The position numbers and the translations under genes are program-made. The notes beneath the pieces are model-generated. The model searched no databases. It saw only the letters and a program-made list of their open reading frames with translations, and was not told where the DNA came from. This document shows, in pieces, positions 1,319-64,000 of a stretch of DNA of 64,000 nt; the first letter of the stretch is position 1; each line of letters begins with the position of its first letter. Origin of the DNA: Phaeosaccion multiseriatum (Eukaryota; Protista; Ochrophyta, other classes). Where the stretch lies: assembly GCA_965112735.1 (NCBI GenBank), contig OZ218962.1, forward strand, positions 2,542,001 to 2,606,000, in the 5' to 3' direction.

Positions 1319-4300
1319 AGCCTGTCACGCTTGTGAAGGCGACGCTGGAAAGCTCCTCAGGCCAATACGGCATATCGAGTAAGTAGAGGGCGAGCACAAA
1401 GCAGCCAATGGCCACCACAGACGGACGGTAGCTGCTGGTGACCTGTGGTGGGCAGAGAGAGAGAGAGGAGGTGGAGCGAGGTAGTGCAGAAGGGGGAGGG
1501 GCCGCGAGAGGGGGACAGACAGTGAGAGGGAAAGAGAGAAACAGAGCGGCCCTTGTGGTTAGTGCGATGCTGGAAGGAAGGAAGGAAGGAAGGAAGGAAG
1601 GAGTCTACCCATACACGCATCGCACCCCCCCTACAATTGTTCTTTGTCTTCCTCCCGTCTGCCTGTGCCCCATTGGCCCATGTGCCTCTGCTTGCCCTAC
1701 CTACCATGCACTACCTACCATGCCCTGCATCCCCTACCCTCCCTGACCCTCTGCCCTTCCCTCCCCTCTCCTCCCCTCCCCTCACCTGAATGTCCCCCAG
1801 AGAGGCCTCAGCAATGAACATACTCAGGTACAGCACCCTTCCCTCCTGCATGCGTTTGAGCGCGTCACAAGCCTCCACCGCCAGTCGGAGGAAGTCCAAC
1901 GAGGTGGGCACCACGAGACGAAAGTGTGTGGTGTTGAGGACCTGCTCCTCCATGTCGAGCACCTGAACAAGAGGGGCGGGAAGAAAGGAAGGAAGGGAGG
2001 GAGGGAGAGGGAGGGAGGGAGAGATGGCGGGGAGGGAGGGAGTGAGGGAGGAAGAGAGACGTCAGACGATGGCGTGCCGGGGAGGGAGAGAACAAGATAC
2101 AGAGAGGGAGAAGTATCGAGAAAGAGGGCGTGAGAGAGGGACAGACAGACAGAGAGAGAGAGAGAGTGCGCACCTGGCCGGGTTTGTATGCGCCACTGTC
2201 CGTGGCGGCAGTGAGGTGCTCCACGCCAATGTAGCTCACGTCCTCGCATTTAGACGCCAAGTGGAGGCAAGCTGCAGCCACAAGCTGACGCTCTGACACC
2301 TTGACCCTCCTGTGTATGTGTTTGCGTGTGTGTGTGCGTGTGTATGCGTGTGCGCGTGTGTGTGTGTGTGCGTGTGCATATGTGTGTGCGTGGTGTGTAT
2401 GTGTGTGTTTTGCAACAGAGAGGGAGAAGAGAGGAGGGGGTTGAGAGAGGAGAAGAGAAAGAAAAAGTTCTATTCGGCCTTCTATGTACTTGAGAGAAGG
2501 AGGGAGGGAGGGAGGGAGGTAGAGGAGAGAGAGGGGCGTAGAGGAGCAGAGTAGGGAGGATCACAAAAAAAGGCAGCTCACGTAACTAACTAACTAACTA
2601 ATTGACTCTCTCATCTCTCTATCTCCCTCCCTCCCTCCCTCCCCACCCTCCTCCTCCCTCCCTCCCTCCACTCCACTCACCTGTGCCCGAGGTAGTCATC
2701 CATGCAGCTCACCGCGAGAAAGACAGTGCGATGACAGCGGTTGAACACATTCACCACATCCATGATCCACTCCACCAGACAAAGGCGATCCTCGGCCCCC
2801 ATCAACGCAGGACGCTCCACCACAGCAGTTGGTGATTCAGCAGCAGCATTGCCCCCTGGGCCCATGGCAAGGGCAGGAGGAGGTACAATGGGTGCCTCCG
2901 CCCCAGCCTCCGTCTCAGCTCCAGCGACGACCGCAGCAGCAGCCACAAGGAGAGGATTGGGGTGAGGGACGGAGAGGTGTCCGAGTTGTGGTTCTTCCTC
3001 CCCTCCTCCTCCTCCTCCTCCTCCTCCTCCTCCTCCTCCTCCGCCGCCGCCGCCGCCGCCTCCGTCGGGGTGCTCGTCTTCCAGGTCCATCTCGTGCACC
3101 ACCTCCTCATCCAGTGTAGGGGCCACTCCTGCCGCTCCTGCCATCTGTGACTGTACCTGTGCCACACCTCCTTCCCCTGCCCCTGCCTCTGACCCATGCG
3201 CTGTTGTGGATGGAGCGGGATGGGTGCTGCCTCCTCCTTGCTCCTCGCCCCCCCCCTCCGGCCCACTGCGGCCTTGACTCAAGCGACACCCGTGCGGAGA
3301 CAGCAAGGGTGCCGGCGGTAGAGCAAGGGGAGGGATGAGGGGAGGAGGCTCAGCGACGAAGTTCCGGTTCGGGCAAAGGTCCCTTTCCAGAGTGAGCCAG
3401 TGCGAGCGGAAGAGATAGAGGGTTTCCGCCTTTGACCCCTTTAGTCTTTCCATGGGGGACAGTTTCAGTCCCATCAGCCGACGGGGAGGTGGAGGTGAAG
3501 TACTAACGGCAACGGAAGCACCACACGATGTAGCAGCACGTGCCACTCCCGTCGCAGCTGCCACCCCGTCAGAAGGACAAGGAGGAGGAGAGGTTTGAAG
3601 CGGAACCGCACATCCCACTCCACCACTATCGCCTGCAGCGGTTGGTGCTACGGCAGCAGTCGTCAGGCCTGAACCAAGCTGCTGTGCTCCTCGAATTGGA
3701 CGCCCTGGGCTCCTCACCGTCGCATTCGGGGTCCGACTGGGCGTTGCAGTCACATCTCCTCCTCCTCCTCCTCCTCCTCCTCCTGCTCCTCCTTCCCATC
3801 TTCCGGGTCTGGCGGCCCTCGGAGCAGCCACAGCAACAGCAGGGTCACTTAAGGCTGCAGCAGCAGGGGTGGTCGATTGAACTGAAGTTTCGATACCAAC
3901 ACGAGGAGCAGGAGCAGGCGCACCCCCAGCAGAAGGAGATTCCGCAGAAGGAGATTCCGCAGCAGCACTGCCTGCTCGGTCAACACCACCCCCGCCTCCC
4001 CCGCCTGCGTGCAGGTCAGCTCCAACAACGTTTTCTCTCTCGCTCTCTTTCTCCATTGCAGCAAAGTACGGGTGGCGCAGCGCCGCCTCTGCAGTAATGC
4101 GCCGCTCGGGGTCGATGACGAGCATCTTTTCCAGGAGGTCGATGCCCAGGGGGTCCAGCTCCAGCTTGGCGAACATAGCCTCGAGCTTGCCTTGGCAGCG
4201 CCAGTCGGGATAGGCCTTGTGACTGAGGGAATGTTGGGGGCATACGGAGGGGCGGGGGGGGAGGGGGAGGGGAAGTTGGGTGCGTGTAGGGGGGCGGGGG

Positions 4301-7300
4301 GAGGGTGTATAGACTGGAAACGGGAGGACCGCGAGAGGGAGGGCGAAAGAAGAGTGTGCCAGCGCGGTAGAGAGAGAGAGAGAGAGGCAAGATAGAGAAG
4401 CAAGGGAAAAGGCGACGCCAACAAACCAATCCACCTTGCTCCCTTCCTCCTCCGTCCCCTCCCCTCCCATATATACCCCGCACACACGTACGTGTAGTTG
4501 GGCAATTTATCAAAACCCGGCCAAGTCTTGTCCACCGGCGTGCCCATCATTTGAAACATTTGAAACAGTTGATCAATCTCCGACGACCCTGTGAAGAGTG
4601 GCTCCCCCAGCACCATTTCTGCGAAGATACACCCCACGCTCCACAGATCCACGGCAGCGGAGTACGTTTGTAGGCCCATGAGGATCTCGGGGGGGCGGTA
4701 CCAAAGAGTCACCACCTGTGAAAGGGAGAAGAAATTGTAGAAACATACATACACAAGAGGGGGGGGGAAAAAGACAAAAAAGAATGTGAGTTGGATGTGT
4801 TTACAATCGTGAAAAGGACAGAACAGAAGCCAAAGCACGCCCTCGCCCATTGCCCTTAGTCCACTCATTTGGTGAGGTGGGGTGAGGTGGGGTGGGGTGA
4901 GGTGAGGTGAGGTGGCCTGTTCCTACCTCCTTGGTGTATACTCCATGCGGGTAGCCCGTGAGGCGGACCAGAGCGAAGTCGCTGATCTCGAGTTTGGCAC
5001 CCTCGAGGGGGGAGCCGGGGTTGGGCCCTGAAACAGGTGAGAAGGGCGCCTTAAGTCAGTGTGGATGGCCGTGGATGGCCCGGCTCAACAACACAAGGGC
5101 TTCGATACACAGCTATACAATATAAACCGACGAGATGTCTCCCTTTCCTCTACACCCTTCGCCCTTTCACCCCGTTATCATACCCTATACCCCGCCCCCA
5201 CACACCCTTTACTCCATACCCCATACCCTACATATATACCCCACACACCCTTTACTCCATACCCCATACCCTATACCCTATACCCCACACACCCTCCGTA
5301 CCCCATACCCTATACCCTACATATATACCCCACACACCCTTTACTCCATACCCCATACCCTAAACCCTTCATCCCTCACCTGGCACGAGTAGCAAGTGTT
5401 TAGGCTTGAGGTTTCGATGCAGTACACCTCGGCGGTGGCAGTAAGCGATGCCCGACAGGAGCTGGCGCAACAGAGACCGCACGCATGAGTGAGGAATGGG
5501 CCGATGATCTTCACGCCGCAACGCCGAGTGCTGCTTTTGTTGCTGCCGAGGGGGGGGCTGTGCCTCACTTGTCGTCGAATCCGACATGGCCGGGACTTGC
5601 ACTCCTCCTCCTCCTGCTGCTGCTCCTCCTGCTGCTGCTGCTGCTGTACCACCAACTGCTACAGCTGCTCCCCCACCTCCGCCGCCGTCGGATGCTTGGT
5701 CGCTGCCCTCGACGTGCAGAATAGCGTCAGCTAAGGCGTTCAGACTGCTCAATCCGCCATTCCCTCCTCCTCCTCCTCCTGCTCCTACCCCATCACCACT
5801 AGCACTGCCATCAAGACTAGCCGCAGCAGCAGCAGGAGGAGGAGGAGAGACTAGGACAGCAGCGGGAGTAGGAGTGGCACCAGCAGCACCACCAACTCCA
5901 CCACCACCACCACCCCCACCCCCTCCTCCTCCTCCTCCTCCTCCTCCTCCTCCTCCTCCACTTCCTCCGTTCCTAGGCAGGAAGCTATGCAGAGTGCGAG
6001 GCACAAAGTCGAAGAAGCACCTAAGCTGATGCCTGTGGAGCACCACCCGCCTCAGCAGAGACACATTGGGGTGATCCATCTGCCTCAAAACCGTGAACTC
6101 ACGCAGCATGTAATAGGGAATGCCCTCTCCCCCCGGGTACACGCGAGCACGCTTCATGGCGTACGTGTGCCCGGTCACCCGGTCACGGACCTGTCGGTGT
6201 TTTGTGTGTAAGTGTATAAGTGTGTATGCGTGTGTGCGTGTGTGTATGTGAGAGAGAGAGAGAGACAGTGTGTGTGTATTGTGTGTGTGCGTGGGGGGGG
6301 GTATGGGTGGGTGGAGAGGGAGAAGAAGGGGGGGGGGATGCTTACGGATTGTCATGCACACCCTACTTCTCTTGCCTCGCGAAAGCTCAAGCAGCGGCAC
6401 CCGCCTCACACTCCCAGCCCCACGTAAGCCCCACACAAGCCGTACGTAAGCCCAATGTAAGGCTTATGTAAATCTTACGTGAGCCCCATGTAAGTCTTCC
6501 GTAAGCCCAACGTAACCCCTACGTACGTACCTCGTACAGAAGCCCCTCCGTGCCCTCCCCCCGCCTGCCCCTGTTGACCAGGCGGCCCCAGTTTAGGGAT
6601 CCGTCTGGAAGAGTCCAGCTCATGTTGTTCCACAGCACCGGGCTCTGACATGGAAATATCGATTGATTCCCACACAGGGGACAGAGGACGAGGAGGCGGG
6701 GAGAGCAGCACAGTTGGTGATACAGCAGCAGAAGAGTGGCAAGTATGCAGGCATTGTATGGGTGAGAGGTCGGGGGGGGAGTCAGGCAAAAGGTAATCTC
6801 TCTTCTCATCCTCTCCTCCTTTTCCCTCTTGTCTCACTCTGTTCTCTTCTCTCGTCCCTCCCTCTATCCTTTTCTCTCCTTCCTGTCTCTCTCCCCTCTC
6901 CTTCCTTCCCCGTCTTCCCCTCTTACCTCAGCATTCGTCTTCCACCTCCCGCATACCGCCGATATCGTCGCCAGTCCCTCCAAGTCAATGGGCCTTGCCT
7001 TTCCCCGTCCCTCCTCCTCGGCGTGCACAAAGAAAGAGAACACTTCTCGCAGTAACTGAGCCCCCAATCCCTCGACCTTTGTGCGGTCTCCTCGCATAAC
7101 CCTCTCCACCGCCTTGCTGTCGCCGTTGGCACCACTACTACTCTGCTGGTTCGCGTCCTTTATTCTGGGCAGTTGGTGATACAGCCGCACCCCGGGACCG
7201 CCCCGGGGAGAGGTACAAGGCAGTTGTTGTCGTGAGAAAGGCCCAACGTCCAACGAAAGTGGCGGTAGTAAAGGTAACGACTTTGCTCGGGTGCCGCCTG

Positions 7301-9625: not shown

Positions 9626-12600
9626 CTACTGATCAGCCCAGTTGACTGCTGCCGTGAGACTGCCGTTGGAGCCTGCGCGCTTCAACGCTGACGCGGGCTT
9701 TACAGACGAGGGCGCAGACGTTGCTGCTTCTGCAGCCGCTGCTCCGTCCCCGCCTCCTGCTGGCGTATCACCAACTCCTGCACCCCCTGCTCCTCCTGCT
9801 GCTGGTGTTGCTGCTGCACCCTCATCCACCCCGTTGGAGTCGGCTGGATTGAGCTTGTATCTGCGCGAGTCAAGCAAGCAAACGGGCAGGGCAGGGTTGG
9901 GGATGCGTGAGTGCGTGCGTGCGTGTGTGCGTGAGGGGGCACACAGGAGGGCGAGGAGGCTGGAACTAGACACTTCTTCCTCCTTCTCCACTCTCATCAC
10001 TAAAGTTACCCCGCCCTCCCACACCCAACCCAACCCACGGCCAACCACCCACCTATGCATGTAGTAGTCGTCCTCCTGCGCCTTCTTCCGTGCAAACTTG
10101 GCCTGATGATATTGCTCGTTCCTGGCGATCCGATCCATAATGGCCTGCACAGTTAGCGTGCTGCGGCTGCTAATCACATGAAAGATGCCTGCCGCCTCGG
10201 CCTCTGCGTACGGGCGGCGGTCGACTGTCGAAGTGTGGGTTAGGGGTGGGGGGGTGGAGGTGGGGTGGGATAGGGTAGGGTAGGGTGGTGGGGTGGGGTG
10301 GGATAGGACGGGACAAACGTGGGAGGTTTGAGGGGAAAGAGGGGGGTTTGTTTTGTTTTGTTGCCAGTCCACGCTTGAAACACAATCACTCTCATCCAAG
10401 CACTTACCGACTCCCTCACTCCTTCTTTCCCTCCCTCTCTCAACCCCCCCCCCCCACCATCCCTCCCTCCCTCACTCCTTCCCTCCCTCCCTCCCTCCCT
10501 TACATGAGTGCTTATCCACATCGTCAACTGTGCCGTGAACAACAGCACTCAGTCCGAGACTTGCAATCATCTCCCTTGTGATCTGCGCGACGAGGCAGGG
10601 TGAGGGTGGGCAGAGAAAGAAAGGAGGGGTAAGAGGCTCTAAATCATTCCTGTCACCTTGATAACTACACCGCCCCTCCACTGACTTACTAACAAACTAA
10701 CCAACCAACCAACCAACAAACAAGCCAGTCCGCTAGCCAGTCAACCAGTCAGCCAACCAGTCAGCCAGCCAACCAACCCACCAACCAACCAATCAACCCA
10801 CCCACCTGCAGCGGGGCGTCAATGAGCACATCATTGACATAGGAGCAGCCCAGCACGCTCAAGACCCTCTCATTGAGGTTCATGATGGGCATGTTAAAGC
10901 CCAACTGCGAGTTGACCACCGCGTCGGAATGCACCCCTACAATGAGGTAGGTGCCTCCGAGCTGCTTCTTTGCCGTCTGAAGCACCTCCACATGCCCAGC
11001 GTGGAACATATCCCACGCACCATCGATATACACCACCTAATGAGAGGGAAGGGAAGGAGGGAGGGAGGGAAGGAGGGAGGAAGGGAGGGAGGGGGGAGGG
11101 AGGGGAAGGGGGGGGGGGGGAGGAGAGAGGGAGGGAGGGAGGGGGGTGGGGACGGAGGGTGTGGGGCGAGAGGGAGGGAGAGTGGAGGTGAGAGGCGGTG
11201 GGGGGGTGGTTGTACACACTGTGAGTTGGTGGAGTTCACTTCAGAGGAAGAAAGAGAGAAAGGGTGTATAGCGCCACTTGCCACACACATCGTAATCCCT
11301 CCCTCCTCCTCCTTCACACCTTCCTGCCAGCGTAATGAAAATCTCCATCGTAAACAGAACTCCTTACGTAAGCACAAGACGTAAGCATAATACACACGCA
11401 CCTTGGCATCCTTAGGCGGCGCACTGACTCCTTGCGAGAAGAGGCGCAGCATCCGCGAAGTGGTGAGGAACTTGGACCGTACGGCCACCCCTCCACCGCT
11501 GCGAGTCTGAGATGACATCACAGGGATCGGCGATCTTCCTCTTCCTCCTCCTCCTCCTCCTCCTGCTGCTGCTCCTGCTGCCGCTCCTCCTACTGATGCT
11601 ACTTTCCCTCCTGCTGCTGCTGACGCGCTGCCGTTTCCGTCCCCTTCCGTTCCACTCACAACTCCTCCTCCTCCCTGTCCCCCGGAGCCAGCAGCAGCAG
11701 CAGCGGCAGCAGCAGTTTGTGATGCAGCAATAGCGGCGGTCGCGGTAGCTCCGACGACAGACTCTCCTACTTCGCTCACACCTGCCGCGGCAGCTGCTCC
11801 ATCCTCTCCCCCTCCCCCGCCTGCTCCGCCTGCCACTCCTCCTGTCGCCGCCATTGCAGCCACGCTTCCTTTCCTGTCAATACCACCACTACCTCCACCT
11901 CCACCAGCAGCAGACTGGTGCGTGCCCCTGCCCCCTCGCGACGGGCTCTTGGAAGCAAGGTGAGGACTCATTCTACCGCCAGCGCCCCCCCCCCCCGCTG
12001 CCGGGTTCCCTGAGTAGTAGTGGTTGTGGTGGGCGGTGCTTCGGAGCAGCATCCGTCCGACTATTTCGGTGGTGGACACTCCTTCGGTGCGGGGGATGCT
12101 GAGATATTTGCCGAGTTTCTTTGCTGTTGCGTACACGTCCTGGCCTGTTTTGTTGGAGAGAGAGGGGGGGGGGGGGGGAAGGAGGGAGAGGAAGAGAGAC
12201 AAAACAGAGAGAAAGGGGAAGAGAGAGAGAGAGAGAGAGAGAGGTGATGAGAGGAGTGAGTGTGAGAGAGAAAGGGATTGATGGAGAGAAAGAGACAAGA
12301 GGGGGAGAGAGACACCATAAACAACCCCACGAAACACCCGCCCTTTCTTTAGGCGCGAAACCTGAGACTTACAACAGTACGCAGCAGCGCAACACAACCC
12401 ACCGCAGCTCCTCCTCCTCCTCCTCCTCCTCCTCCTCCTCCTCCTTACCATTGACAATGCAAGGGTCGTCCCCGTGCACGACGAAGTCGATGTTGTGCTT
12501 CTCAATCACCTCGTTGAGGTACTCCGCCGACATTATATAGGGCACATTGGTCACCACCTGCACAGAGGAGAGGGAGGGGAGGAACATGGGAGAGAGGCAT

Positions 12601-17317: not shown

Positions 17318-17774
17318 CTACCGAGAAGTTGGAGGCACGTTAGGGGTCCAGTCTGGTTGTGGGTCTGTATTGGTGCCCACGTCCACAGTACTCCTCCTCC
17401 TCATAGAGCCCCTCTCGGCCGCCCCCTGGTGGTCGTCTCTTCTGGGCCGCATCTCTGTGGCGCCCTCCTCCTCACGGCCACTGGACCGCTTCATCTCGGC
17501 CGGCTGCTGCTGCTCCTGCTGCTGCTGCTCCTGCTGCTGCTGCCGCCGCTGGTGTATCACCAACTGCCGCTGCTGCTGTATCACCAACTGCTGCTGCTGC
17601 TGTTGCTGCTCCTGCAGCTGCTGTGCTCCTTGTCTCCCACCCACTAACATGTCCGCAGCAGCGTCACCCTCCACGCCTTCTCGTTGTGATCGCTCGGGGC
17701 CTCCTACTTGAAACGACGGTCGCGAGCCCACTTCACGCCGCTGCTGCCGCCGCCGCTGCTGCTGCATTACCAGG

Positions 17775-17816
<42 letters not shown>

Positions 17817-17951
17817 CGCTGTTCCTGTTGCTGTCGCAGGAGCATTTCCTGCTGCTGGCCGAAGAAGCGTTGGCGGCACTCATACTCCCGCCGGTCCTCG
17901 TGTGCGGAACAGTACGGCTGCGGCTGCCCGTGAGGACGATAACACTCGTAC

Positions 17952-17982
<31 letters not shown>

Positions 17983-18510
17983 GCTTCTGCTGTATCGCCC
18001 ACTGCTGCTGCTGTATCGCCCACTGCTGTGCACGTTGCCGCCTCTGCCTTTCACACTCCTCCTCCTCCTCCCATCTTCGTCTCGATTCATCAATCTCTCG
18101 CTGAGTTGGACGAATCCCGTAGGATGGAATCCGAGGGCTGCTCCGATCCACCCCGGAGCACTGCCCCAGGTCATCCGGCTTCAACGCCGCCCTCTCCTTG
18201 AAGGGCTCGACCATTTCTCGCTGCGGCTCTGGGGGTATCCTTCCCGGTAGTGGGGTTCCCCACTCTTGTCCGTGCCTCGAGTACGTGCCTCCTCCTCTGC
18301 CGTGCAGCATCGCTCTTCTTTCCGTTTCCCACACCTGCTCGTCTCGCACCATCCCTCCTCCCTTGTCGCCGCTGCTGCTGCGCCTACGCTTCCTGTGGCC
18401 GCTGCTCTTGTAGTTGTTGTTGTCGGTGGTGGTGGTGGTGTTATTGCCGTCACCGTCATTGTCGTCCTCGTCGCTGTTGTCGTCGTCGTCGTCGTTGTTG
18501 TTGTTGTTGC

Positions 18511-18574
<64 letters not shown>

Positions 18575-18612
18575 GCTGTTGTTGTTGTTGTTGTTGTTGT
18601 TGTTGCTGTTGC

Positions 18613-18703
<91 letters not shown>

Positions 18704-47531: not shown

Positions 47532-48900
47532 GCAGCAGCAAGTGCAGCAGGTGGTGACACAGCGGAAGATGAGCTGACCTCCACCTTCTCCCGCAAGCCT
47601 ACGGAAGTGTCTATGGAAGAGTTAAAGAGGGAGCTTGCCCTCCTAGATCCCAATGGAGCCGCCGCTGTGAGCATAGGGTAAGTGTCCCACACGTTCTTCT
47701 ATCCTCCTCCTCCTCCTCCTCCTTCTCCGCCTCCTCCTCCGCCTCGTCCTCCTCCGCCTCCTCCTCCTACTACTACTACTACTACTACTACCACTACTAC
47801 TACTCCTCATCCTCCTCCTCCCCCTCCCCCCTCCCGCTCCCCCTCCTCCTCCTCCTCCTCCTCCTCCTCCTCCACAACAGGGCCGAGGACAGGCAGTCGT
47901 CGGACAGGAGTAGGAGCAGCAGCCCCACCGCCACGAGGAGGAGCAACGCCATCGCCACAGCTTCCTCCTCTCTATCATCGTCCAGCCCCGCTGCCGTCGT
48001 CCGACGCTTCAGCGATAGTGTAACCAAGTCTTTCCCCACACGCTTCCGAGCCCCGGGCGGAGGCATGCTAAGTCCGATCTCGAGCCCTGTCGACGGTCGT
48101 AGCCCGGAGTCAACTTCTCCCCGCTCGCCCCGTTCGCCCCGCTCGTCTCATTCTCCTCGATCTCCCTCTCCCCGGGGGGGCTCTGTGTCTCCTCGTGCCA
48201 CGGTCACGTCTCCTAGCAGCAGCACGGCATCCCCCGGGGGGACACGCGGAGGACGAAGAGAGCACGAGAGCGGCGGCGGCAGTAACAGTATTGACATGCG
48301 TCATTCCTCCAGGGGGGCTGGTTCTCCTTCTGCTACAAGTACGGCCTCTGCTGCGTCCCCCCGGGGCACGCCCCAGCAGCGCAAGGGCAGCGGCCCGGTC
48401 ACGGCGGGAGGAGAAGGAGACTCGTCATCATCACCATCATCATCATCGGGCCGGGGTCGGTCATCGCTCGCACGTGGAAGCCCTTCCGCTGCTGCTTCTG
48501 GGGCCGATCCCCCTTGTTCCCCTTCGTCTGCTGCCGACCAACTCAAGAGCCAGAGCAGCTTCATCCTCGCCCAATGGAATCTCCCGAAGGACAAGTCTCG
48601 GGAAAGGCGACAAGTCGGGTGAGTGACTGGGTGTGGTGGCTGGCTGGAGGACATGAGCGGGTGCGTGCGTGAATGTTCCTGTGTGTGCGAGTGCCACGCC
48701 CGATCGCCCGTCGTCTCGTTAGGTGGTTTTGCCTCAGATTCGCTCTTTCGCACCCAGCTACTCGTTAGTCAGTAAACCCCCCCCTGGCATCCCTCCCTTT
48801 CGGCAGGTCTGTGCTACAGAGCCCTTCCGGTTCCCCGAGGGGTTCCGGGCGCAGCTCCCCTCGGAGCTCGGCGAGGCACCCAGATACCTCAGTTAATTAG
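45333..48900 (+). CDS. Atypical Rab/Ras-like small GTPase with long N- and C-terminal extensions, ~7 exons
   Basis: G1 GDKGVGKT, switch I SSQGVDF (via a GC-AG intron 46024-46243), G3 YDTSGK, ILYVYDITD, G4 LVGCKAD, G5 FAEVSSATGQGVEECF. Ser/Pro-rich tail, no terminal Cys motif. Confidence 0.75.
46078..46228 (+). repeat. (CCTGAC/CCTGAG/CCCGAC)n hexamer array in an intron
   Basis: About 25 units. Confidence 0.9.
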
Positions 48901-49268: not shown

Positions 49269-51582
49269 ATGCACACCAGAAGAGAGGAAGCACCTGAAAG
49301 TAGTGTAGACAGTGGCGGCAGCAGGACCAGCCGCAGCAACTCGAGCAGCGTGCGGACGGGAGGGGGGAAACCGGGACGGGGGCAAGGGCGGCAGCGCAGG
49401 CAGACCTTGGAAGCAGCAGCAGAGGCTGCGGCCACCGAGGGGCATCGGCAAGACGTGTGGAAGCGCTATAAAACGTGCTTTCAATCGGATCTTGGCTTCG
49501 ACCGAATCACCGGCTTGGCGGCCAAGACTCTGCACACCAGCGCAGCGGTCCTGGTACTGAAGCTAGAGAGCGGCTACAGATGGGTCAGCTGGGCTGGGAG
49601 TGTATTCGCGGGAGACGTCGTGTCCAACGTGAGTGCCTGCGTACGTTCTTGCTTGCTGCCTGTGTGCTTGCTCAACTGCGTGGTGGTGGTGGTGATCGCG
49701 GTGTGAGATCCTGGAGGGGCTCCTGCCTGCCTGCCAGAGCGCTATTTGATTCTTGTCTTCTGCGTGTTCAATGTGCCAGTGATGCCGCGGTGCGGAGGAG
49801 AGTAAATTAAGTTTTGGGGAAACCTACCCTAAGGCCCACCAACCCGTCCTCCTCCTCCTTCTCCTCCTTCTTCCTCTTGCTTCTCCTCCTCCTGCTGCTG
49901 CTGCCTTGACCCTGCGGCACCGCTGCTTGCAGACATCCTCCCCCAACCCCCTTGTCGATTATGTGATGAATGGTATCCCTGGTCAGCCGACCATCATCCC
50001 GGACGTCCGTCGGGAACCATCCCTGGCGGGCGCAAACACGTCAACGCTCTTACCGGGCGTGCCCAATATCAGATTCGCAGCAGGTAGTGCACGCTGGCGG
50101 CCTCTCTCTCTCAAATATTGTGTGTACGTTCTGGTAACGGCTCTGTTTCTCCCCCTCAGAGTACGGGAATTAAGAGAGTGGCAGAGTCAGCAGGTCCCTC
50201 TCCACGCTCACCGCCTTTTTGATTGAGCTTAAATTGTTCCCTGAGGGTGAGAGGATTGTGATCGTACATTCCACCGATCAATGTGTCGATTCCATCCAAG
50301 TACAAGGTTAACCGCCCTCCTCCCCTTCCCCCCCCCCGTATCACCAACAGGCGTAGACTTCATGGTCGAAAACGCCCCTCTTGGCGCTCTCATCATCGCC
50401 GACTCAGAGCCCTGGCCAGACGGCATCAGTGTGAGGGAGAAGTGCTACCTCACTGAGTTTGCTCGCCTCGTCACCAGCGAGGTGATGCTTCGCTCCGAAC
50501 GTCGCGCTGAACACGCCTCCTACCTCACCACCACCGCGCACAACCTCAAAATGCCACTCGAGGTGTGTCGTGAGCTCCAGGGGTGGGGCAGGTGGTTCCT
50601 TCCGTGGTTCCTTCCGGCGGTGTGGTTCTGTCATTTTGTTTCTGTGGTGTGGCACTGTGGTTGTCGTTCGGCTGCCATCTTTTCTCTATGCCCACGAAGT
50701 TTTAAATCCCCCTGCTGTCTCCTACAAATACTCACACGAAATCTCATTTCAAGTGTGCCCTCCCCCCATACACCTTTGTCTCTGTTTTGTTCGGTCTTCC
50801 CTATCCCTCCCCCCCAGTACCTGACAACGACCCTGAGTGAATTGAGACAAGAGTTGGACAAGCTGGGGTACAGCGAGACCCCACCCTCACCAGCACCATC
50901 ATCAGCAGTTGATGATACACCGCCACCACCACCACCACCAGCACTTGGTGATACGGCGGCAGCAGCAGAAGCAGCAGCAGGAGCAGCAGCATCGGCGGCA
51001 GCAGAGGTGGAGGGTGGACACGGCGCCTCTGCGCAACAAGATCAGCAGTTGGTGGTACAGCAGCAGCGGGCGGCGCTGGAATGCGCAGAGGTGTGTGTAG
51101 ATATGATGCATCAAACGGTGGGGTGCGCAATTCAGGAGAGCACCAGCATGCTGAACCCCAGTCTGTGGGAGACATCACAGGAGAGAGATGCGAGGGAGAG
51201 TGAGAGCGAAGGGCCAGGGAAGGGCAAGGGAAAAGAGGAGCAAGGTGGTGGTTTTGGGTCCGAGCATGACCCAATGCTAACCATCGCGAGGGGCAAGACT
51301 CTCGTGGAGACGGACGTTCGGGCACTTGTGCAGCGCTGTGTGACAATTGCGAGTCACATGATCCCGGAGGGGGAGGTGAGCGTGCTTGTGGGGGGGGGGG
51401 AGTGGGGTGTATAGACATTTGTCCCAATTCCCAACCCAACCTTCCTTCCTCTCCAACCCCCTTCCTTGCTCACACTCTCATTCTCTATCCTCTGCGGGAT
51501 TGCGTGTGCTGTTTCGTCTGCAATTTTCGTCACCCCCACCCCCCTACTCTTTTCCACCCCTTCTTCTTCTTCTTGTTGTTGC

Positions 51583-51628
<46 letters not shown>

Positions 51629-54114
51629 ATTGTTGTTGTTATTGTTGTTGTTGTTGTTGTTGTTGTTGTTTGTTTGTTGTTGTTGTCTATGGTATGCAGG
51701 CCTCTGTGAATTGCAACGTGAAGATTGTCGAGCCCCCTGCCGTATCACCAACTGCTGACGCTGCGACTCAGCCTATAGGGGACGACGCGGACTGTCTAGA
51801 GGTCCCCGCGCTCGTGAAGACGAATGGCCAAGTTGTGTGGCACTGCATCATGGACCTGCTCAGCAACGCTTGCCGCTTTTGCGGAGGAGGAGAGGTGGTG
51901 AGTGAGAGAGAGAGTGAGTGAGTGAGCGAGTGAGGGATGGAGTGAGTATGAGTGAGTGAGTGAGTCAGTCAGTCAGTCAGTGAGCGAGTGAGTGAGTGAG
52001 TGAGTGGGTGGATGACTGAGTGAGTGAGTTGAGTGAGTGAGTGAGTGACTGGGTGGATGAGTGTTTCGGAGAGGGAAGGCAGAGAGGATGTATGGATGTT
52101 GGAAACACCTCCACCCTACTACTACTACTGCTGCTGCTACTACTACTACTCTTACTACTAGACTAATAGCACTAACTCTTCTTGCTCTTGCTCTTCCTCT
52201 TGCCCCTGCCCCTGCCCCTGCCCAGACGGTGTGTGTGTCGGCGAGCAAGACACATGGGGTGGTGCACATCAAAGTGTGCGTGCAGGACAAAGGGCCAGGG
52301 GTGGCGGAGGAGCTTCTGGGCAAGGTAGGGCGATGGAAGGCGATGGAAGGCGATGATGGTGGGGAGGAGAGGGGGGCGGGGAGGGGGGAGGAAGGTATAA
52401 CAATGAGGAGCTGCGCGTGGGTGTGGGGGGTGTAATTGCGTTTGCTTTTCTACATGCAAGGAAAGCCGCAGCGAGGAGTGGGGTAGTTCAGAGGAAGAGG
52501 ACGAGGGTTTCATCCAGAGACAAGAAGAGCTTCTCTGAGAGGGAAAGACACTCTAGTTTTCTGCGGCTCTGCAAGGATTCTCTCAGAAGGCTCACCTCCC
52601 CCCCCCCCCCCCTCCTTGCATACACACACGCACACTTGCGCGCCCACATATGTACACTTCCCCCCCCCCCCACACACACATATATATACACACTCAAACC
52701 CATGCGCGCACACACGCACGAAAATGCACAGCTTTTTTCAACTCCGTTCATCACCGCGGGCAGAAAGCACGAGGGTCAAGGGCTCGGGTTGTTTTCCGTC
52801 AGCAAGGCCATGAAGTCAATTGGAGGGACGTGCGGCTGTGTGAACCTTGCGCCTTCCTCAGAGGAAGGGGGAGGGGAGGGGGCGGAGGAGGAGAAGGGGA
52901 GGGGCAAGGCGGGCGACAAGGGGGATGAGGAGGAGGGGGAGCAGACAGGTGTGCATGCCTGGATTGAGTTTCCGGACTGCAATAGCCTGCTCTCTACAGC
53001 TGATTCGGAAGAGATGGAAGACGTAGAGGGAGAGGGCTCATCGCCTTCGAGGAGGTGAGGCTTGTAGGGGGTGATGTTGGTGAAGCGAGGGTACACGTGA
53101 TTGTCAGTTGAGGGGAGGTTATTGCTGCTGCTGCTTCTGATGTCGATGGGTCGTACCCAAGCCCTACTGCTGTAGTGTTCGGAACTGAGTTTGGGGTTCT
53201 TATCTGCTTTGCTCATGCCTCCTCCTCCTCCTCCTCCTCCTCCTCCTCCTCCTCCTCCTCTCACTCCTGCTTGACTCGACTCTCGGAATCGCTCTTGCAG
53301 ACGAAGCCTCTCCCCCTCTTTGGCGGATCGCTTCCAAGGTACCCTTTCTTCTCTATTCAAGGCGAAAAACACCACCACAACAAAGACGACAATGTCAACG
53401 AAAAGGGCCCTCGTGATCGACGACAGCTCCGCCACTCGTGACGTCATCACTGACATGCTGCGCCCCCGGGGGTGGAGCGTCGATCAGGTACGATATGGTC
53501 TCTATATGTAGTCATGTCCTGACACACGGTGCCCGTCCCTCCCCCCTCTGTCCTGACACCCCCCACCCCTCTGTCCTGACACTCCTCACCCCTCTGTCCT
53601 GACACTCCTCACACCTCTGTCCTGACACCCCCCACCCCCCTGTCCTGACACACCGTCCTGACACCACGAACGAGCGCAGGCCAAGGGCGCGCACCAGGGT
53701 CTGTCGATGCTCAAGGCGGAGGCATACCAGTTGGTGATACTGGATATGGTCATGCCTGTGATGTCGGGCCTCCAAGTCGTGGTGGCGTATCGAAAGTGGG
53801 TAACTACGCTACTTACCGAGGCTCTGACGGAGGGAGGAGGAGGAGGAGGAGGAGAAGGAGGAGGAGGGGGAGCAGCGGGAGGAGGAGAACAAGGCAACAA
53901 CGATGCGAACAGTCAGGAAATGATTCTGCGGAGGAGAATGACGTACATTGCCATGCTACGTAGCCAGGAGGTGACTGAGGAGGACATGGAGCCGGGGACG
54001 CGCGAACTTGTGAGCGAAGTGTTGGAAAATCCCTTGACGGAAGGCGACATGGAGTCACTCTTGGGCAGGGTGGAGGGGTACATGGGGCAGTTTCAAGTGA
54101 GTCAATTGAAGTAG
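49269..54114 (+). CDS. Hybrid histidine kinase: GAF + HisKA + HATPase_c + receiver, ~9 exons
   Basis: GAF: FDRITGLAAKTL, IIPDVRRE, NIRFAA|G, LGALIIADSEP. H-box TAHNLKMPL, N-box DLLSNACRF, G1 VQDKGPGV, G2 GQGLGL. Receiver: ALVIDDS, YQLVILDMVMPVMSG. Confidence 0.88.
53516..53663. repeat. Intronic ~24 bp minisatellite (TGTCCTGACAC-C-rich), about 7 copies
   Basis: Direct inspection. Confidence 0.85.
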
Positions 54115-57387: not shown

Positions 57388-58983
57388 GGTGGGTGCGTAT
57401 GTGGAGTGAGTATGTGTGCGTGTGTGTCAGGAGGGAGTGCGGGCGGGCGGGCGGGCGGGAGGGAGGGAGGGAGGGAGCAAGTGATTTTGTGGTTGAGTTT
57501 GTGGGTGAGGGTGACTCATGTGTGAGAGAGTGAGAGGGCGATTGCATGAGTTGCGCGGGCGTGTGAGTGTGCGCGTGGCTGAGGGCGTGTGTGCCTCCGT
57601 GATTGACTGCATGAATGGATGAGGAAGGAAGAGAGGGAGAGTGAGTGAGTGAGAGACCGAATGCGTGAGTGAATGACCCCGTGAGTGAGTGAGTGAGTGC
57701 GTGAGTGAGTGAGTTAGTGCTTGCATGAGCCTACGCGAGTTGAGTGAGTCAGAGCAGTATAGATGTAGTCAGCTCACCTCAGTCTCTCCTCTATCCCAAC
57801 TTCTTAACCCCTTCTGCTACCCACACCCTACCCCACGTCGTTTGGCACATGTGCGGATGTGCATGCGTGCGTGTGTGCGTGTGTGTCTGCCCTTGTCACG
57901 GTTGCACGACTACCGCTTGACTATCGCTGACTCTAGGAGTCTGTGGCGAAAGGAGAAGGACGAAACCGTCATCGCGGCGCGCCTCCTCTCTCAGCTAAGC
58001 TCCACGCGAGCTACTGACGCCAACAAATGGATGGAGGTGAGGAGAGCGATGAGAGCCAGGCACATTCCTCCGCTCTCACCCCGTCCCCCCTGTGACTTTT
58101 TGGTAGTGCTTCGTAGGCCTGACTGACTGACTGACTGACTGACTGACTGACTGCCTGAGTGAGTGAGTGCCTGTCTGCACTGCCTTCCAACGCCCATCTG
58201 TGACTCTCGGACAACCAACACATGCACATACACAGGTGGGGCAGCTGCTCTTCTCCGTGAGTCGGCACTCCTCCATGCTACAGCGCTGGATACAGTGGAC
58301 TGTCCGGGCGGCGCCTCCACCCGTAGCACCAACTGCTGCACCACCACCTTCTCCTCTTCCTTCTTCTTTATGCACCCCGGCGGGGAGGAGACGCTTAGCA
58401 GCAACAGCAGCAGTTGGTGATACAGGAGGAGGAGGAGGGTCTCCGAGGAGGGGCTTTACGGAGCAGGACTGTGCCCAGGCGTGGAGAAAGATCCGTCCCC
58501 GCACCTCCATGGACAGCCCCGACGCCGTCGGATGCAGAGAGTTCCTAACAGAGGCTCATGTTGCTGCGGCGGCGGCTGCTGCTACTGGATCACCAACTGG
58601 CGCAGCCGCCCAGAGGGCAGGCGACGAGGCCCGGAAGCGACATGTGAGTAACGTGCGAGGGGGGTCAGGGGATCAGACACCATCTCCTGAGTGAGTGCTT
58701 GCAATGCGGAGCGGCAGATATGCAGTTGTTGCCTTCCCCGGTGCTTCTGGTCCACTGTCGAGTTGCTGCCCTGTGTGTAGCACCACTATGTCAACAAATG
58801 ACTCACTCTCTACACTCTCTAAGTGTTGCCCGGTCAACGTGCACATCAGCTACCATCCTCATCGCACCCCCCCCCCCCCCCTTGCCCCGCCCCTTCTTCA
58901 TCACCACGGAACACACCCCTCGCCTCTTCGCAAACAAAACAAACCAAAACAAAACAAAACAAATGTCTGCGCGCACACACCCA

Positions 58984-59031: not shown

Positions 59032-62000
59032 GCAAAGAGATCCTGGCGTGCTTCCCTCCTGAGCGCAAACGCGTACTGCCCTTCCTGGACAGCGCCGGTC
59101 AGCCCCTCGAGGTTCCCTGCGTTACCCTCTTTCGGGGAGGAGGAGGGGGGGGCGCCTCTCGCAACAACGGCGTGAGCGTCCCCCTCCCCCATGGGCTGCT
59201 GTATGGGGTGCCTCCCCTCAGCGATGAGCACTCCCTCGTACCCGGCAGTGTGGAGGCGGAGCTAAGGAAGGGGGATAAGGTGCTGCTTACCACAGAGTCA
59301 GCGGCCGTTTCATGTACGTTTGTGGGCTTGGGGGGTTGGTGGTGGGTGGTGATGGGGGATGCCTGTGTGTGTGTGTGCGTGTCTGTGTGTGCATTTGTGT
59401 GTGTGTGTTCGTGTGTGTGTCTATGTATGCATCCGTGTGTGTGTGTGTGTGGTACGGCCACCCTTCAAGTCGTTGTAGAGGAGGCCATTCCCAACCCCCC
59501 TGCCTCCACCGATCCCCCCCTGCTGCGTCATATGTGTTTTGATCTTGTTATTCATGTCTCCGCCATCTGTAACCACAGCCTTCCTTCCGTCATGGCAGCA
59601 AGTGCTTGCGTTTCGCCTGCAACGGCCTGGAGTCGTGCTACAAGAAACATGGCTGAGGGGAAACCCTTCCACCCATCGTCACCATCATCGGGGTAGTTCG
59701 GACTCACCTACTCCTCAGCAGCGACAGACTCGAACCCCGGGGGGGGACGGGAGGGGGAGCGCAGCAGAGGAGCGGTATGGACATGCAGTACTTATGGCCA
59801 TGCTACCCCCTCCCTACTACGGCTGTGGAGGAGGAGGAAGGAGAGGAGGAGGACGAGGAGGAAGAGGAGAAGCAGGAGCCGGAGGAGGAGGAGGAGCAGG
59901 AGGCGCAGGAGGGGGAGGTGGCACCGGCGCCAAGGGCCGCTCTCGACAACCCCCTCCCCCTCCTCGAAGAGAATTGGGTATCGAAAGTCTGTGGGGCGCT
60001 TGGGTATACAGAGCCCCTTGCGCGGCCCCGGGGGGTCCTCCAGAGGGTGATACAGCACCACCTGCCGATGCGGAAACCGATGGAGGGCTCCTGTTTCAGC
60101 TGCCTGTGCCCGACGCGGCAACGGCCCTCAAGCGGCTCTCTGCCTTGGCGGCTCACGATCGGGAGCAGCAGTTGGTGATGCTGCTGCAGCAGCAGCAGCA
60201 GCAGCAGCAGCGGCAGCGATACTCGGACCATCTCCACCTGCCTCCCTCTCCCTCCTCCTACTACTCTCCGGCCGCACGGCCAGGGGCAGTGGTAGTGCCG
60301 CGGTGCGAGGCCGGCATATCCCCGCGGGGGCAGCAGTTGGTGATACACCAGCAGCAGCAGCAGCAGCAGCAGCTGCATATACCAGTGCCGGGATCGTCAT
60401 CATCCTTTGCTTGGAACTCCCCCCGGGGCAACCATCACCAAAAGATCCAGAAGACGGGCAGGCGCAGTTTCAGTGCCAATGCTTGGGAAGAGCCTCAGGT
60501 CGGATCGTCGGGCTCGGGCTCGCTCCTCACCCCTGCCCCTTCAGTGCACCTCATCGAGGCGCGACAAAACGCCCTGCTTATTGCATGGGGCAAGGCCTTT
60601 GGCCCTGTGCGGGTGGACGTCTTTATGGCCCCACCAAAACGAAGTCTGAGCCACCATTCTCCGACGCGGGGCAGTGGCGTTGGCAGCGACAGCAGCAGCG
60701 ATGATGGGAGGAGGAGGAGGAGGAGGAGGAGGAGCGCTAGGGGGGGGGGAGGAGAAGGAGAAGAAGGCGGCGGCGGCGGCGGAGGAGGAGGAGGAGGAGG
60801 GAGAGGGGGCAAGAAGGTCTCCGAGGCGTTGTCGTCATCTGCGCAGCGGAGCACCAACAGGCCCTTGTGGGTGTGTGTGTACAGGGGCGTGGAGCAGGGC
60901 TGCGAGATCGAAGGGCTCAAGCCGGGCAGACCGTATCGCCTGCGCGTGGCGGAGGAGGGCTCCCACTATCGGTAAGCAGGGCAACGACTGTACCGTATCA
61001 CCAACTGCGGTGGCGGTGGGCTGGGGGCCTGTTGGCTGAGGATTTTTGAATTGTGTTACGAGGCGTTACTTATCGTTCCCAAAATTCGCCCTAGGTCAAG
61101 GCAGGGTGAAAGGGTCGAGGCCTTGATGGGGCGACACGAGGGGACCCCGGTTTCATCGGTTTCATCGTTTCATCGGTTTCATATTTCCATCGGTTGAGAG
61201 CTGTGCGATGAGTACACAACTCAAGGCCCGAGCGAAACAGCAAATGAATGCACCCTTATCCTCTTTCCTCCCTACCTCTATGGCGAATGACACTGACCAA
61301 AGCTTACTAACCTTTTCTGTATTACCAACTGCCGTACGTGTGCACGTCGTAGTCTCGTGGACTTTTGTACCCTTCCGGGGAAGCCCCCGGCCCCAGTAGC
61401 GGTGGCCTGGATCACAGGAGGAGGGGGAGGAGCGGGAGGAGGAGGGGAAGACCGCAGCGACGAGAAGACAGTGAGCCTCCGCCTGTGTCTCTTTGAGAAT
61501 GGCGACTTTGGGGTCCCAACACGAGGAAGCAGCAGCACATCCAGTGCCATCTCGATCTCCTGTTCCTCCTCGTTTCGAGTCTCGCGCGAGGAGAAGCGCC
61601 AGCGGTTACTGCAGTTGGAGAGTCGGCGCCGTCGGAATAGAGAGGAGGAGGTGGAGCAAGCTACAGCAGCAGCAGCAGCGAGTTCGGGTAAGGGTACGAG
61701 CAAGAAGAGTATGAGCCTGGACCTTCGTGCGGGGCGCTTCCGGCTTCAAACTCGTCCGGCAACTCCAGCAGTTGGTGATACATCAGCAACAGCAGCGAGC
61801 GCGAGGATGGGACAGCAGGATGCGACCGAGGGCCATGGAACGAGAAGGAGAGAGAACGGGGGAGGACGACGGGGAGGAGGAGGAGGAGGAGGAGGAGGAG
61901 GAGGAGGAGGAGGAGGAGGAGGAGGAGGAGGAGGAGGAGGAGGAGGAGGAGGACGAGGACGAGGAGGAGGAGGAGGACGAGGACGAGGAGATGATGGTAC

Positions 62001-62496: not shown

Positions 62497-62866
62497 TCAA
62501 GTACTTATCGTTCTCACCGGAGAAGAATTTAATAAACTGAACCGAAATTGAGTTACTAATGCGTGTATTGTTTCGTAGTCTTATAATACAACCGCAGACC
62601 CCGTTCGCCAATGGACGAGGGCCCACACCTACACCCGAAGTACATGCAAGAGGTACCATAGTCTTATCAAACACCTCAATTAACAATTGACACTTATAGC
62701 CCTCCCCCCGGCCCTTCAAGCGGCAACGACAAGGGGTACTCTGCTGCCCTCGGGAGTGGGGGATGTTGACCCCCTCAAACATACCGAGATGCATGTAAAT
62801 ATACGCCGCCGTAGGCCACCTTCCTTCTACCGCCTTCTACCTCCTCACCACGAGGTCGCAGAAGCC

Positions 62867-64000
62867 TCAGCAGATGGGTGCAAATGCCCGTTCGTCGGGC
62901 ATCGCTGCTGCGCCCACACCACTAGCAGTAGTGCTGTCGTCGTACTCCCGTATCACCAACTGCTGCTGCTCCACCCCCTCCTCCTCCATCTCCTGTAGGC
63001 AAAGGAGCACCTTGTCGTGCTGCCCTGTCTGCCCGTATGCCTCTAGCATGGCGCTGTAGCAGAAGGAATTGAGGCGTATACCCCTCTCTCGCATGTGCTC
63101 CCCAAGCTCTACCACCCGTCCGTGCTGACTCGCCCTGCTGCACGCCTTCATTGCTGCCGTATAGCACACAATGTTGGGCTTCTGTATCACCAATTGCTGC
63201 GGCTGCTGCTGCTGCTCCTGCTCAGCCGCCTCCATACTGTGCAAGATCTCCAATGCCCTTTTGCACTCGCCGGCCCGACCACAAGCATCGATGGCGATGC
63301 TAAAGCTGAACACATCTGGCTGTGCTCCCTTGTTCGCTGCCGCATCACCTCCCCCCCCTCCTGCCGCTGGAACTGATGCTGGTGCTGGTGCTGCTGGTGC
63401 TGGTGCTGGTGCTGGTGCTGATGCTGCTACTCCTGGTGGTGCTGCTACTTCACCGCCCATCTCCCCAAAGAGATCCAGCCCCTCTCCCATAAACCCCTCA
63501 AATAGCCCGAAAGCCCCTTGCTCCTGCCCCCCCTGCTGCTGCATCTCCGCAAGCAGGTCCAGCGTGACCTCCCATTGCCCTGCCTTACCAAAAGCATCCA
63601 TCACACAGTTGTACAGCAAGGTCGTGGGTTCGAAACCATATCTCTGCTGCATCTCCGTCAGGAGACGCAAGGCTCTTTGCGGCTGGCCGCTCTTGCTGCA
63701 CGCAGTGATGGCCTTTCTAAAACTGTGCATGTCCGGCCGTAGAGAACGCACAGCTCTCCCTCCTCCTCCTCCTCCTCCTCCTCCTCCTCCTCCTTCTCCT
63801 CCTCCTCCTCCTCCTCCTCCTCCTCCTCCTCCTCCTCCTCGTCGTCGTCGTCCTCCTCCTCCTTGTGCTGCTGGTACTCCTGCTGCTGCTTGGTCTTCTC
63901 CACCAGCAGCACAGCCTCGCTGCTCCTCCTCCTCTTCGTTCTCTTGCACGCGAAGTTCTCTCATCACCAGCAACACCTCATCATACCTCGCTGCCTTACT
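62867..64000 (-). CDS. Pentatricopeptide repeat (PPR) protein, 5' end outside the window
   Basis: PDMHSFRKAITACSKSGQ, PTTLLYNCVMDAFGKAGQWE, PDVFSFSIAIDACGRAGE, PNIVCYTAAMKACSRASQ, NSFCYSAMLEAYGQTGQ. Confidence 0.93.
   Translation of the reverse strand, partial: SKAARYDEVLLVMRELRVQENEEEEEQRGCAAGGEDQAAAGVPAAQGGGGRRRRGGGGGGGGGGGGGGEGGGGGGGGGGGGRAVRSLRPDMHSFRKAITACSKSGQPQRALRLLTEMQQRYGFEPTTLLYNCVMDAFGKAGQWEVTLDLLAEMQQQGGQEQGAFGLFEGFMGEGLDLFGEMGGEVAAPPGVAASAPAPAPAPAAPAPASVPAAGGGGGDAAANKGAQPDVFSFSIAIDACGRAGECKRALEILHSMEAAEQEQQQQPQQLVIQKPNIVCYTAAMKACSRASQHGRVVELGEHMRERGIRLNSFCYSAMLEAYGQTGQHDKVLLCLQEMEEEGVEQQQLVIREYDDSTTASGVGAAAMPDERAFAPIC

Follow-up and report, generated by a model that had tools for sequence, protein, structure and literature searches.

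A short word joined in phase to CAG triplets recurs across unrelated genes of the alga Phaeosaccion multiseriatum

Why should one non-repetitive word of 13-14 nt recur on both strands, in several reading frames and in unrelated genes within a single stretch of an algal genome? The word is (G)CAGTTGGTGATAC, and about 30 copies of it lie in 64 kb of Phaeosaccion multiseriatum, a heterokont alga and a relative of the brown seaweeds (assembly GCA_965112735.1, contig OZ218962.1, positions 2,542,001 to 2,606,000). This whole stretch of 64,000 nucleotides is what we call the window, and all coordinates refer to it. The original prediction, made from the sequence alone, took the word for a candidate DNA-level signal: either a binding site for a chromosome-level factor or the product of templated insertion or biased conversion. 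Our best reading is that the word is an ultra-short dispersed DNA repeat.

The excess over chance is large. Eleven copies of CAGTTGGTGATAC are exact, 12 have one mismatch and seven have two (Table 1), which reproduces all the copies, coordinates and strands that had been listed before, and they are divided evenly between the strands (15:15). In dinucleotide-shuffled sequence the mean is 0.00 for exact copies and 0.98 when up to two mismatches are allowed. Markov models of orders 1-6, trained with the copies masked, expect at most 0.002 exact copies where 11 are found, so the count is, as had been claimed, far above chance and is not accounted for by higher-order models. Matches with exactly three mismatches are at the chance level (11 against about 12.8 expected), and thus the word family stops sharply at two mismatches. 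About one two-mismatch match is expected by chance, the likeliest candidate being the one at 38986. Among the 13-mers with at least 11 copies in the window, CAGTTGGTGATAC is the only one that is not a microsatellite; the others are mostly tetranucleotide arrays.

Counts of 8-mers place the edges of the word. GCAGTTGG is found 20 times (3.5 expected) and GGTGATAC 16 times (2.5 expected), and the excess drops beyond both of them, so that the edges are sharp. The conserved unit is 13-14 nt, plus one more upstream CAG: the triplet directly upstream of the word is CAG in 61% of the copies, a share that falls to about 20% further out. ATA is followed by C in every one of the 23 copies that have no more than one mismatch, and among the 16 exact 9-nt cores in the window only the one at 42829, within a decayed three-mismatch match, lacks this C. 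The triplet that follows the word is CAG in 10 copies, CGG in six and CAC in three. The word is, in short, a non-CAG core of 9-10 nt (TTGGTGATA-C) joined in phase to CAG triplets.

Split into triplets, CAGTTGGTGATAC reads CAG-TTG-GTG-ATA-C, and the CAG inside it keeps the phase of the CAG triplets around it. When the flanks of the 30 copies are aligned the neighbouring triplets are CAG in phase, while out-of-phase AGC or GCA is nearly absent. The window has 57 CAG/CTG tracts, 12 of which touch a copy in the same orientation and one of which (at 38986) touches a copy in the opposite orientation. That the word is often flanked by (CAG)n had been stated before; the flanks are indeed there, but the statement was too weak, as a single orientation and the right phase are kept by practically all the flanking triplets. 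A rider to the same statement, that the word seeds CAG tracts, finds no support in the window, where 45 of the 57 tracts carry no copy.

The 23 good copies, by which we mean those with at most one mismatch, differ in how much tract surrounds them: about nine have it on both sides, about eight on one side and about six have none (7170, 50338, 51742, 53728, 60995 and 61319, four of these six being exact). Summed over the copies there are 58 CAG units downstream of the word and 39 upstream, but the polarity is not significant (12 copies are richer downstream and eight upstream; sign test, p = 0.5). Where CAG tracts are interrupted by something other than the word, it is by one variant triplet (GAG, AAG, CGG), and the word is the only complex interruption that is found repeatedly.

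The window is eukaryotic, with 53-62% G+C and intron-split genes full of low-complexity runs. By Pfam and PDB matches it holds an ankyrin-repeat gene, a PPR protein, a CDK-like kinase, a Ras-family exon, a cytochrome heme-lyase exon and a histidine kinase with a receiver domain. In open frames of at least 250 amino acids the word is read as Q-L-V-I nine times, V-G-D-T seven times, V-S-P-T four times, and Y-H-Q-L and I-T-N-C once each, which bears out the first four of these readings as they had been given before. Even a single open frame, 50281-51414, which carries the H-box of the histidine kinase, reads the word in three ways (V-S-P-T, V-D-D-T/L-G-D-T and Q-L-V-V). The pure CAG runs in long open frames are read as Q in nine cases, A in six, C in three and S in one, and the frame usage of the word mirrors that of such runs, mostly Q and A.

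A protein-coding motif is rejected because of the three readings in one open frame and because two copies lie in an inferred intron. A structured RNA gene or element is rejected as well, since no Rfam family reaches its gathering score in the window, no tRNA is found there, and both orientations of the word occur inside single genes. A further argument, from stop codons, was dropped: the AGC frame of the word holds a TGA and no copy in long open frames lies in it, but this is circular, and plain CAG runs are also almost never read as Ser.

The inferred intron lies at 60970-61352, between two open frames of a fibronectin-like gene. It has a GTAAGC 5' site, a branch-point-like CTTACTAAC and a GTAG 3' end, and on account of these signals the copies at 60995 and 61319 are probably intronic. 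The word thus probably occurs in introns too, as had been claimed before, judging by the splice-like signals around these two copies. The same stretch also shows some features of its own: CTTACTAAC is a textbook yeast-like branch site, there is an internal GGTTTCATC tandem repeat, and the two word copies have the same orientation.

The copies are not spread evenly. Between 18.1 and 50 kb there is no exact or one-mismatch copy, a gap that had been pointed out before, and only two two-mismatch matches and the 9-nt core at 42829 are found in it. The clustering is stronger than the supply of tracts would give: the word touches none of the 15 CAG tracts in 18-50 kb but 12 of the 42 elsewhere, six of these being among the 29 tracts of 1-18 kb and six among the 13 of 50-64 kb. 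Further, local duplication of word plus tract is visible. The copies 17554/17578 form a tandem pair at 24 nt and 17992/18013 another at 21 nt, the latter with two changes in common, and the copies at 60169 and 60334 are alike in layout, CAG-word-(CAG)8.

The mismatch classes (11:12:6:0) fit a Poisson distribution with a mean of 0.83, or about 6% divergence per site, better than they fit a geometric one. Such classes are expected if the copies arose in one burst and then decayed, although the sample is small. We do not claim subfamilies. At position 10, A has become G in three copies and C in two, but by our own estimate chance would give about as many shared variants for some 24 mutations over 39 possible changes.

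Was the word inserted at these places, or did it replace what was there? Two copies in recognizable proteins give different answers. When the PPR protein is compared with that of the brown alga Discosporangium, the copy at 63184 falls within a Q-rich insertion of 12 residues between two PPR repeats; this is the only site with extra sequence, seen at the protein level. The exact copy at 53728, which has no CAG flanks, encodes the Q-L-V-I of '...AEAYQLVILDMVMPVMSG...', and this peptide aligns without gaps to 'KTKFDLILLDLELPMMDG' of PmrA and to other receiver domains. It fills conserved columns, the beta-3 strand that ends in the phospho-acceptor aspartate. Given the peptide, the chance of the four codons is about 2% by the codon usage of solid coding sequence, and the peptide itself is not the usual one; a coincidence at 53728 is therefore very unlikely. 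Yet this copy cannot have arisen as a simple insertion, and insertion alone does not account for all the copies.

Copying at the DNA level that is tied to CAG triplets is suggested by the lock in phase and orientation, by the duplicates found locally, by the clustering in certain regions and by the fact that the copies have no longer sequence in common. The reading we prefer, to which we give a probability of about 0.4 and which is therefore tentative, is templated copying of this kind between CAG tracts, followed by filtering through selection. Where a CAG tract, or the DNA beside it, suffers a break or gap, the repair would use as its template a tract that bears the word, or a nucleic-acid copy of such a tract. 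The CAG triplets would supply the homology or microhomology, and the core would be written between CAG units with the phase undisturbed. Local slippage would then duplicate word plus tract, and fast contraction and expansion of the tract would leave copies at tract edges or without a tract. In general, tract lengths change far faster than bases, which can leave exact copies in such positions. Selection would remove the copies that damage proteins. From what is general in repeat biology, the word as an interruption may also stabilize its tract, which would make it a preferred donor. How the word is copied, from what template and with what activity today is inferred. Of the two alternatives first proposed, templated insertion or biased conversion fits this anatomy best and is the class we prefer, except that the copy at 53728 is not an insertion.

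Several observations speak against copying between tracts. The roughly six of 23 good copies that have no CAG tract include four exact ones, and their tracts must have vanished while the word stayed intact. Many copies are found at the edge of a tract and not inside it, unlike what is expected of conversion that needs homology on two sides. There is only one family of complex interruptions, and generic conversion from tract to tract leaves unexplained why it alone has spread. Insertion is seen at 63184 only. Finally, the copy at 53728 is gapless and free of CAG flanks, so that it is not an insertion and cannot have come from a conversion that homology in the flanks would guide, and it is the main fact that no model fits comfortably.

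Table 1. Matches to the 13-nt word in the window, with their flanks and readings.
Position	Strand	Match	Tract and flanks	Reading and location
2826..2838	+	one mismatch (ATA -> ATT)	(CAG)3 downstream	E-S-P-T on opposite strand, open frame 2677-4485(-)
3639..3651	+	two mismatches		V-A-P-T, open frame 2677-4485(-)
5646..5658	-	one mismatch (GTA variant)	5' edge of (CAG)6	V-G-G-T, G/A-rich insert of CDK-like kinase exon
6711..6723	+	exact	(CAG)3 downstream; upstream GCA run one base out of register	
7170..7182	+	exact	no tract	Y-H-Q-L, open frame 6864-8642(-)
9765..9777	-	one mismatch	degenerate tracts both sides	V-G-D-T, open frame 9626-10399(-)
11713..11725	+	two mismatches	3' edge of CAG tract	A-S-Q-T, open frame 10937-12505(-)
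17554..17566	-	exact	within long CAG tract; tandem with 17578 (24 nt)	Q-L-V-I
17578..17590	-	exact	tandem partner of 17554	Q-L-V-I
17992..18004	-	two mismatches, core TGGGCGATA	tandem with 18013 (21 nt)	Q-W-A-I
18013..18025	-	two mismatches, identical to 17992 variant	tandem partner of 17992	
38986..38998	-	two mismatches, probably chance	only match touching a tract in opposite orientation	
42826..42838	-	three mismatches, exact 9-nt core TTGGTGATA	foreign flanks (GTG before, TTG after)	possible old decayed copy; only core copy in 18-50 kb
47548..47560	+	two mismatches	3' edge of CAG tract	downstream of Ras-family exon
50338..50350	-	one mismatch	no tract	on + strand follows poly-C run and ends CAG before coding stretch; inferred intron 3' end, otherwise V-S-P-T
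50906..50918	+	one mismatch	CAC/CAT flanking triplets	V-D-D-T, histidine-kinase open frame 50281-51414
50942..50954	+	one mismatch	36 nt after 50906	L-G-D-T, open frame 50281-51414
51046..51058	+	one mismatch (GTA variant)		Q-L-V-V, third reading in open frame 50281-51414
51742..51754	-	exact	CGG next; mere trace of tract	
53728..53740	+	exact	no CAG flanks	Q-L-V-I, receiver-domain beta-3 strand before phospho-acceptor Asp; gapless alignment
58323..58335	-	one mismatch (CTA variant)	CGG next	V-A-P-T, 175-aa open frame (+)
58411..58423	+	exact		V-G-D-T, same 175-aa open frame (+) as 58323
58587..58599	-	one mismatch	5' edge of tract	G-S-P-T, same 175-aa open frame (+) as 58323 and 58411
60041..60053	+	two mismatches		E-G-D-T, open frame 59539-60975
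60169..60181	+	one mismatch	5' edge of (CAG)8	Q-L-V-M
60334..60346	+	exact	5' edge of (CAG)8; 165 nt from 60169, layout identical	Q-L-V-I
60995..61007	-	exact	no tract	22 nt into inferred intron 60970-61352
61319..61331	-	one mismatch	no tract	between branch-point-like CTTACTAAC and 3' AG of inferred intron 60970-61352
61769..61781	+	exact		V-G-D-T, open frame 61357-62496
62950..62962	-	exact	3' edge of short tract; CGG next	Q-L-V-I at end of PPR open frame
63184..63196	-	one mismatch		Q-L-V-I in 12-residue Q-rich insertion between two PPR repeats (against brown-algal PPR protein)

The copies could also be retrocopies with extreme 5' truncation, an explanation that we consider unlikely but that deserves some weight. 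Their source would be an RNA ending in ...CAGCAG-UUGGUGAUA-(CAG)n, either the 3' end of a microsatellite-tailed non-LTR retrotransposon (one without long terminal repeats) or short interspersed element (SINE), or a template that is read through as in the TERC-ITS insertions described below. The CAG tail would prime on nicked DNA, and reverse transcription would stop 13-17 nt into the unique part at a point set by CAG microhomology. Such a process would explain the fixed size of the word and its sharp upstream edge, where CAG falls from 61% in the adjacent triplet to about 20% further out, and it allows for copies in DNA without tracts. The somewhat larger amount of tract downstream (58 against 39 units) is in its favour, but the polarity of 12 to 8 copies is not significant and several copies have a tract upstream only. 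The receiver-domain copy is length-neutral, which does not suit a retrocopy.

Two kinds of known elements make this explanation worth considering. Target-specific non-LTR elements that integrate into microsatellites (PMC4640811) use a specific simple repeat in a fixed orientation and leave many truncated copies, all of which resembles what we see. However, those copies vary in length and have a common 3' region, and the full-length elements encode reverse transcriptase, while here nothing is shared beyond 13-17 nt. In TERC-ITS (PMC8537989, PMC2246262), telomeric-like repeats together with a fragment retrotranscribed from telomerase RNA are inserted at double-strand breaks, with 41 loci in 22 species. 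The likeness is that, at many unrelated loci, a short sequence that does not vary adjoins a simple repeat tract in a fixed orientation; what is particular to TERC-ITS is that repeat tract and fixed fragment are inserted in one step by RNA-templated repair from a template RNA that is known. Judged by this likeness, TERC-ITS is the nearest mechanistic analogue, but it is rare and uses the telomere repeat, whereas here about 30 copies are found in 64 kb, the repeat is CAG and the polarity is not significant.

The original prediction had named a longer parent element as something to look for. None is present in the window. No copy shares sequence with another beyond CAG on either side, the long repeat families are all simple-sequence arrays, and among some 20 large open frames scanned with Pfam no transposase, reverse-transcriptase or endonuclease domain was found. 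As the flanks of the 30 copies hold only CAG triplets and the long repeats are simple-sequence arrays, a fragment of a transposable element is rejected as far as the window goes. A footprint of transposon excision was dropped since the core is not palindromic. A telomerase product was dropped too, as the core does not resemble a telomere repeat and tandem arrays of 12 nt are absent. We also considered and dropped a micro-intron of 9 nt (GT...AG), the 3' end of a tRNA or a primer-binding site, and a resemblance to U6 or to a tRNA D-loop.

The word might instead be the recognition site of a DNA-binding factor, for instance of the multi-zinc-finger or Myb type and acting in recombination, replication or chromatin, that is kept by selection at the DNA level. 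We regard this as improbable. It agrees with the independence of frame and strand and with the exact copies kept in coding sequence, and at 53728, in the core of a conserved domain and with no change of length, point changes under selection fit better than an insertion. The first six bases of the word would also, on the other strand, match the c-Myb consensus site. However, a binding site gives no reason for the CAG phase or for the single orientation relative to CAG, the copies are clumped, sometimes only 21-36 nt apart, and absent from 32 kb, and the mismatch classes resemble neutral decay. The chromosome-level binding site that had been offered as one of the two alternatives is thus left unsupported, as the phase lock, the tandem duplicates and the clustering point to an origin by mutation or copying.

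The comparison with bacterial words that went with that alternative can be kept as an analogy only. HIP1, DNA uptake sequences (DUS), Chi and KOPS are, like the word, short and far above chance in coding sequence whatever the frame. HIP1 of cyanobacteria is palindromic, Chi and KOPS show a skew with respect to the replication strand, and uptake sequences have their role in transformation. In contrast, CAGTTGGTGATAC is non-palindromic, as had been said before, and its strands are balanced at 15:15. Further, the known words are bacterial and not tied to a trinucleotide repeat or to its phase.

In a third explanation, which we hold to be quite improbable, a short nucleic acid (a small RNA, or a cDNA of the retron or diversity-generating retroelement (DGR) kind) would serve as a repair template that overwrites partly matching DNA and leaves its length unchanged. 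The template would pair with CAG tracts by its CAG ends, and its core would allow it to act on near-matches, of which the codons in the receiver domain are an example. No other model considered here manages to cover the copies embedded in tracts, those without tracts and the gapless one in the receiver domain together. Replacing three CAG units cannot be distinguished from inserting 9 nt, so the phase would be kept automatically, and the conserved stretch of about 14-17 nt is in the size range of small RNAs. It is weakened by the PPR site, where there are extra residues and the change is not length-neutral, and by the fact that we know of no eukaryote with such an overwriting pathway acting genome-wide.

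An artefact of adapters, barcodes, polishing or assembly, or an effect of composition or codon usage, is hardly credible, as the copies have diverged by one or two mismatches, lie in frame inside real domains and on both strands, are largely present in independent public reads as described next, and exceed in number what Markov models can account for. Four public runs of one sample were assembled independently, and their contigs contain 0.96-0.97 of the sampled 31-mers of the region 59500-62500. By our own arithmetic about 9% of the 31-mers there overlap six copies, which would set a ceiling of about 0.91 were those words missing, and most of the copy-overlapping words are therefore present in the reads. 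Part of the locus, amounting to a third of the larger stretch, is present in a run that comes from a different study and sample. The probability that the listed explanations leave over belongs to explanations we have not thought of.

How unusual would copying between tracts be? In disease-associated CAG repeats, a CAA or CAT interruption is one variant triplet, produced at a single locus by point mutation. They resemble the word in being a non-CAG unit in phase within a CAG tract, which is expected to lower slippage and breakage. They differ in that here a foreign core of 9 nt is identical at dozens of loci. In the genomes of Eimeria (PMC4199364) CAG repeats behave as a feature of the DNA itself: they lie preferentially in coding sequence, are read mainly as Gln or Ala, and occur in bands that alternate with repeat-poor stretches. 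The tracts in our window are likewise read mainly as Q or A, and both they and the word are regionally uneven; the likeness concerns the tracts and not the word. No fixed non-repeat word within the tracts is mentioned in the portions of that paper considered here, and an apicomplexan is compared with a heterokont alga. The oddity here is accordingly the invariant core of 9-10 nt and not the tracts.

We rate a dispersed repeat of 13-14 nt that is locked to a trinucleotide tract and written into exons as outside the known kinds, with no description found in the literature searched; a census of the whole genome could still reveal a conventional parent element. The string of the word occurs in that literature only within unrelated primers, in line with the earlier statement that its author knew of no such motif described in a eukaryote. 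If it is what it seems to be, the word is also far below the size of any mobile element known to us. It is possible, if doubtful, that a genome-writing process copies one word of about 14 nt into many loci without any element-encoded machinery in the copy. Two forms of it can be imagined: a 'selfish interruption' that spreads between CAG tracts by ectopic repair, or a small RNA or cDNA template that overwrites in a length-neutral manner. Either form would amount to a kind of dispersed repeat not known before, and would give in-frame protein change a new origin. That sequence already present may be overwritten by the process is hinted at by the copy in the receiver domain, and we know of no repeat family that does this.

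If the word is what it seems to be, it is abundant, with dozens of copies in these 64 kb, and it is written into protein-coding exons, where it adds Q-L-V-I, V-G-D-T or V-S-P-T to unrelated proteins. Genomes would then have a new way of producing dispersed repeats and protein variants in frame. Further, it would be a natural system for the repair of breaks in trinucleotide repeats from ectopic or RNA templates, and would so bear on the biology of repeat expansion.

Searches outside the window gave little. The 18-mer CAGCAGTTGGTGATACAG has single matches only, 76 in metagenome contigs, 46 in a collection of 596 Gb of bacterial and archaeal genomes and nine in viral contigs, which is the chance level. 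Neither a second copy nor a CAG tract is found at any of the 131 loci (0.87 Mb). The translated motif region as a protein query finds nothing after correction for low complexity, and an exact-product look-up of two open frames of the window has no match. The H-box exon of the histidine kinase has no homologue among 1.84 billion representative proteins, its one match being a translated tandem repeat. The protein libraries searched hold no close relative of this heterokont alga; with the clean part of the PPR gene as the query, the nearest proteins are from the brown algae Discosporangium (35% identity) and Ectocarpus (28%). One Discosporangium contig of 8.7 kb has no copy of the word but is too short to be informative.

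Some features of the genes and repeats around the copies can be added. In the region 2677-6436(-) the CDK-like kinase exon carries a G/A-rich insert of about 150 residues. Downstream of it one open frame has weak matches to the C-terminal part of a kinase and to the N-terminal part of a cyclin, and a kinase-cyclin fusion is possible. The region 50281-54114(+) is a hybrid histidine-kinase gene, whose receiver domain is split by an intron after ...WSVDQ. At 18332-18850 a GTT/AAC triplet array of about 500 nt gives a run of well over 100 asparagines in the open frame 17318-19564(-), which also holds four copies of the word and long Gln runs.

In general the open frames are filled by triplet repeats (CAG, GGA/CCT, GGC, AAC) that give poly-G, poly-A, poly-Q, poly-N and poly-E, and the non-coding stretches are dominated by tetranucleotide microsatellites (GGGA, GAGT, GGAT, CAGA, ATAC, GGAA). 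The only complex repeat in the window is an inverted repeat at 21914-22102 and 22455-22643, with arms of 189 nt that are 95% complementary and 352 nt apart. It has no copy of the word and is possibly an element like a miniature inverted-repeat transposable element (MITE), or a long hairpin.

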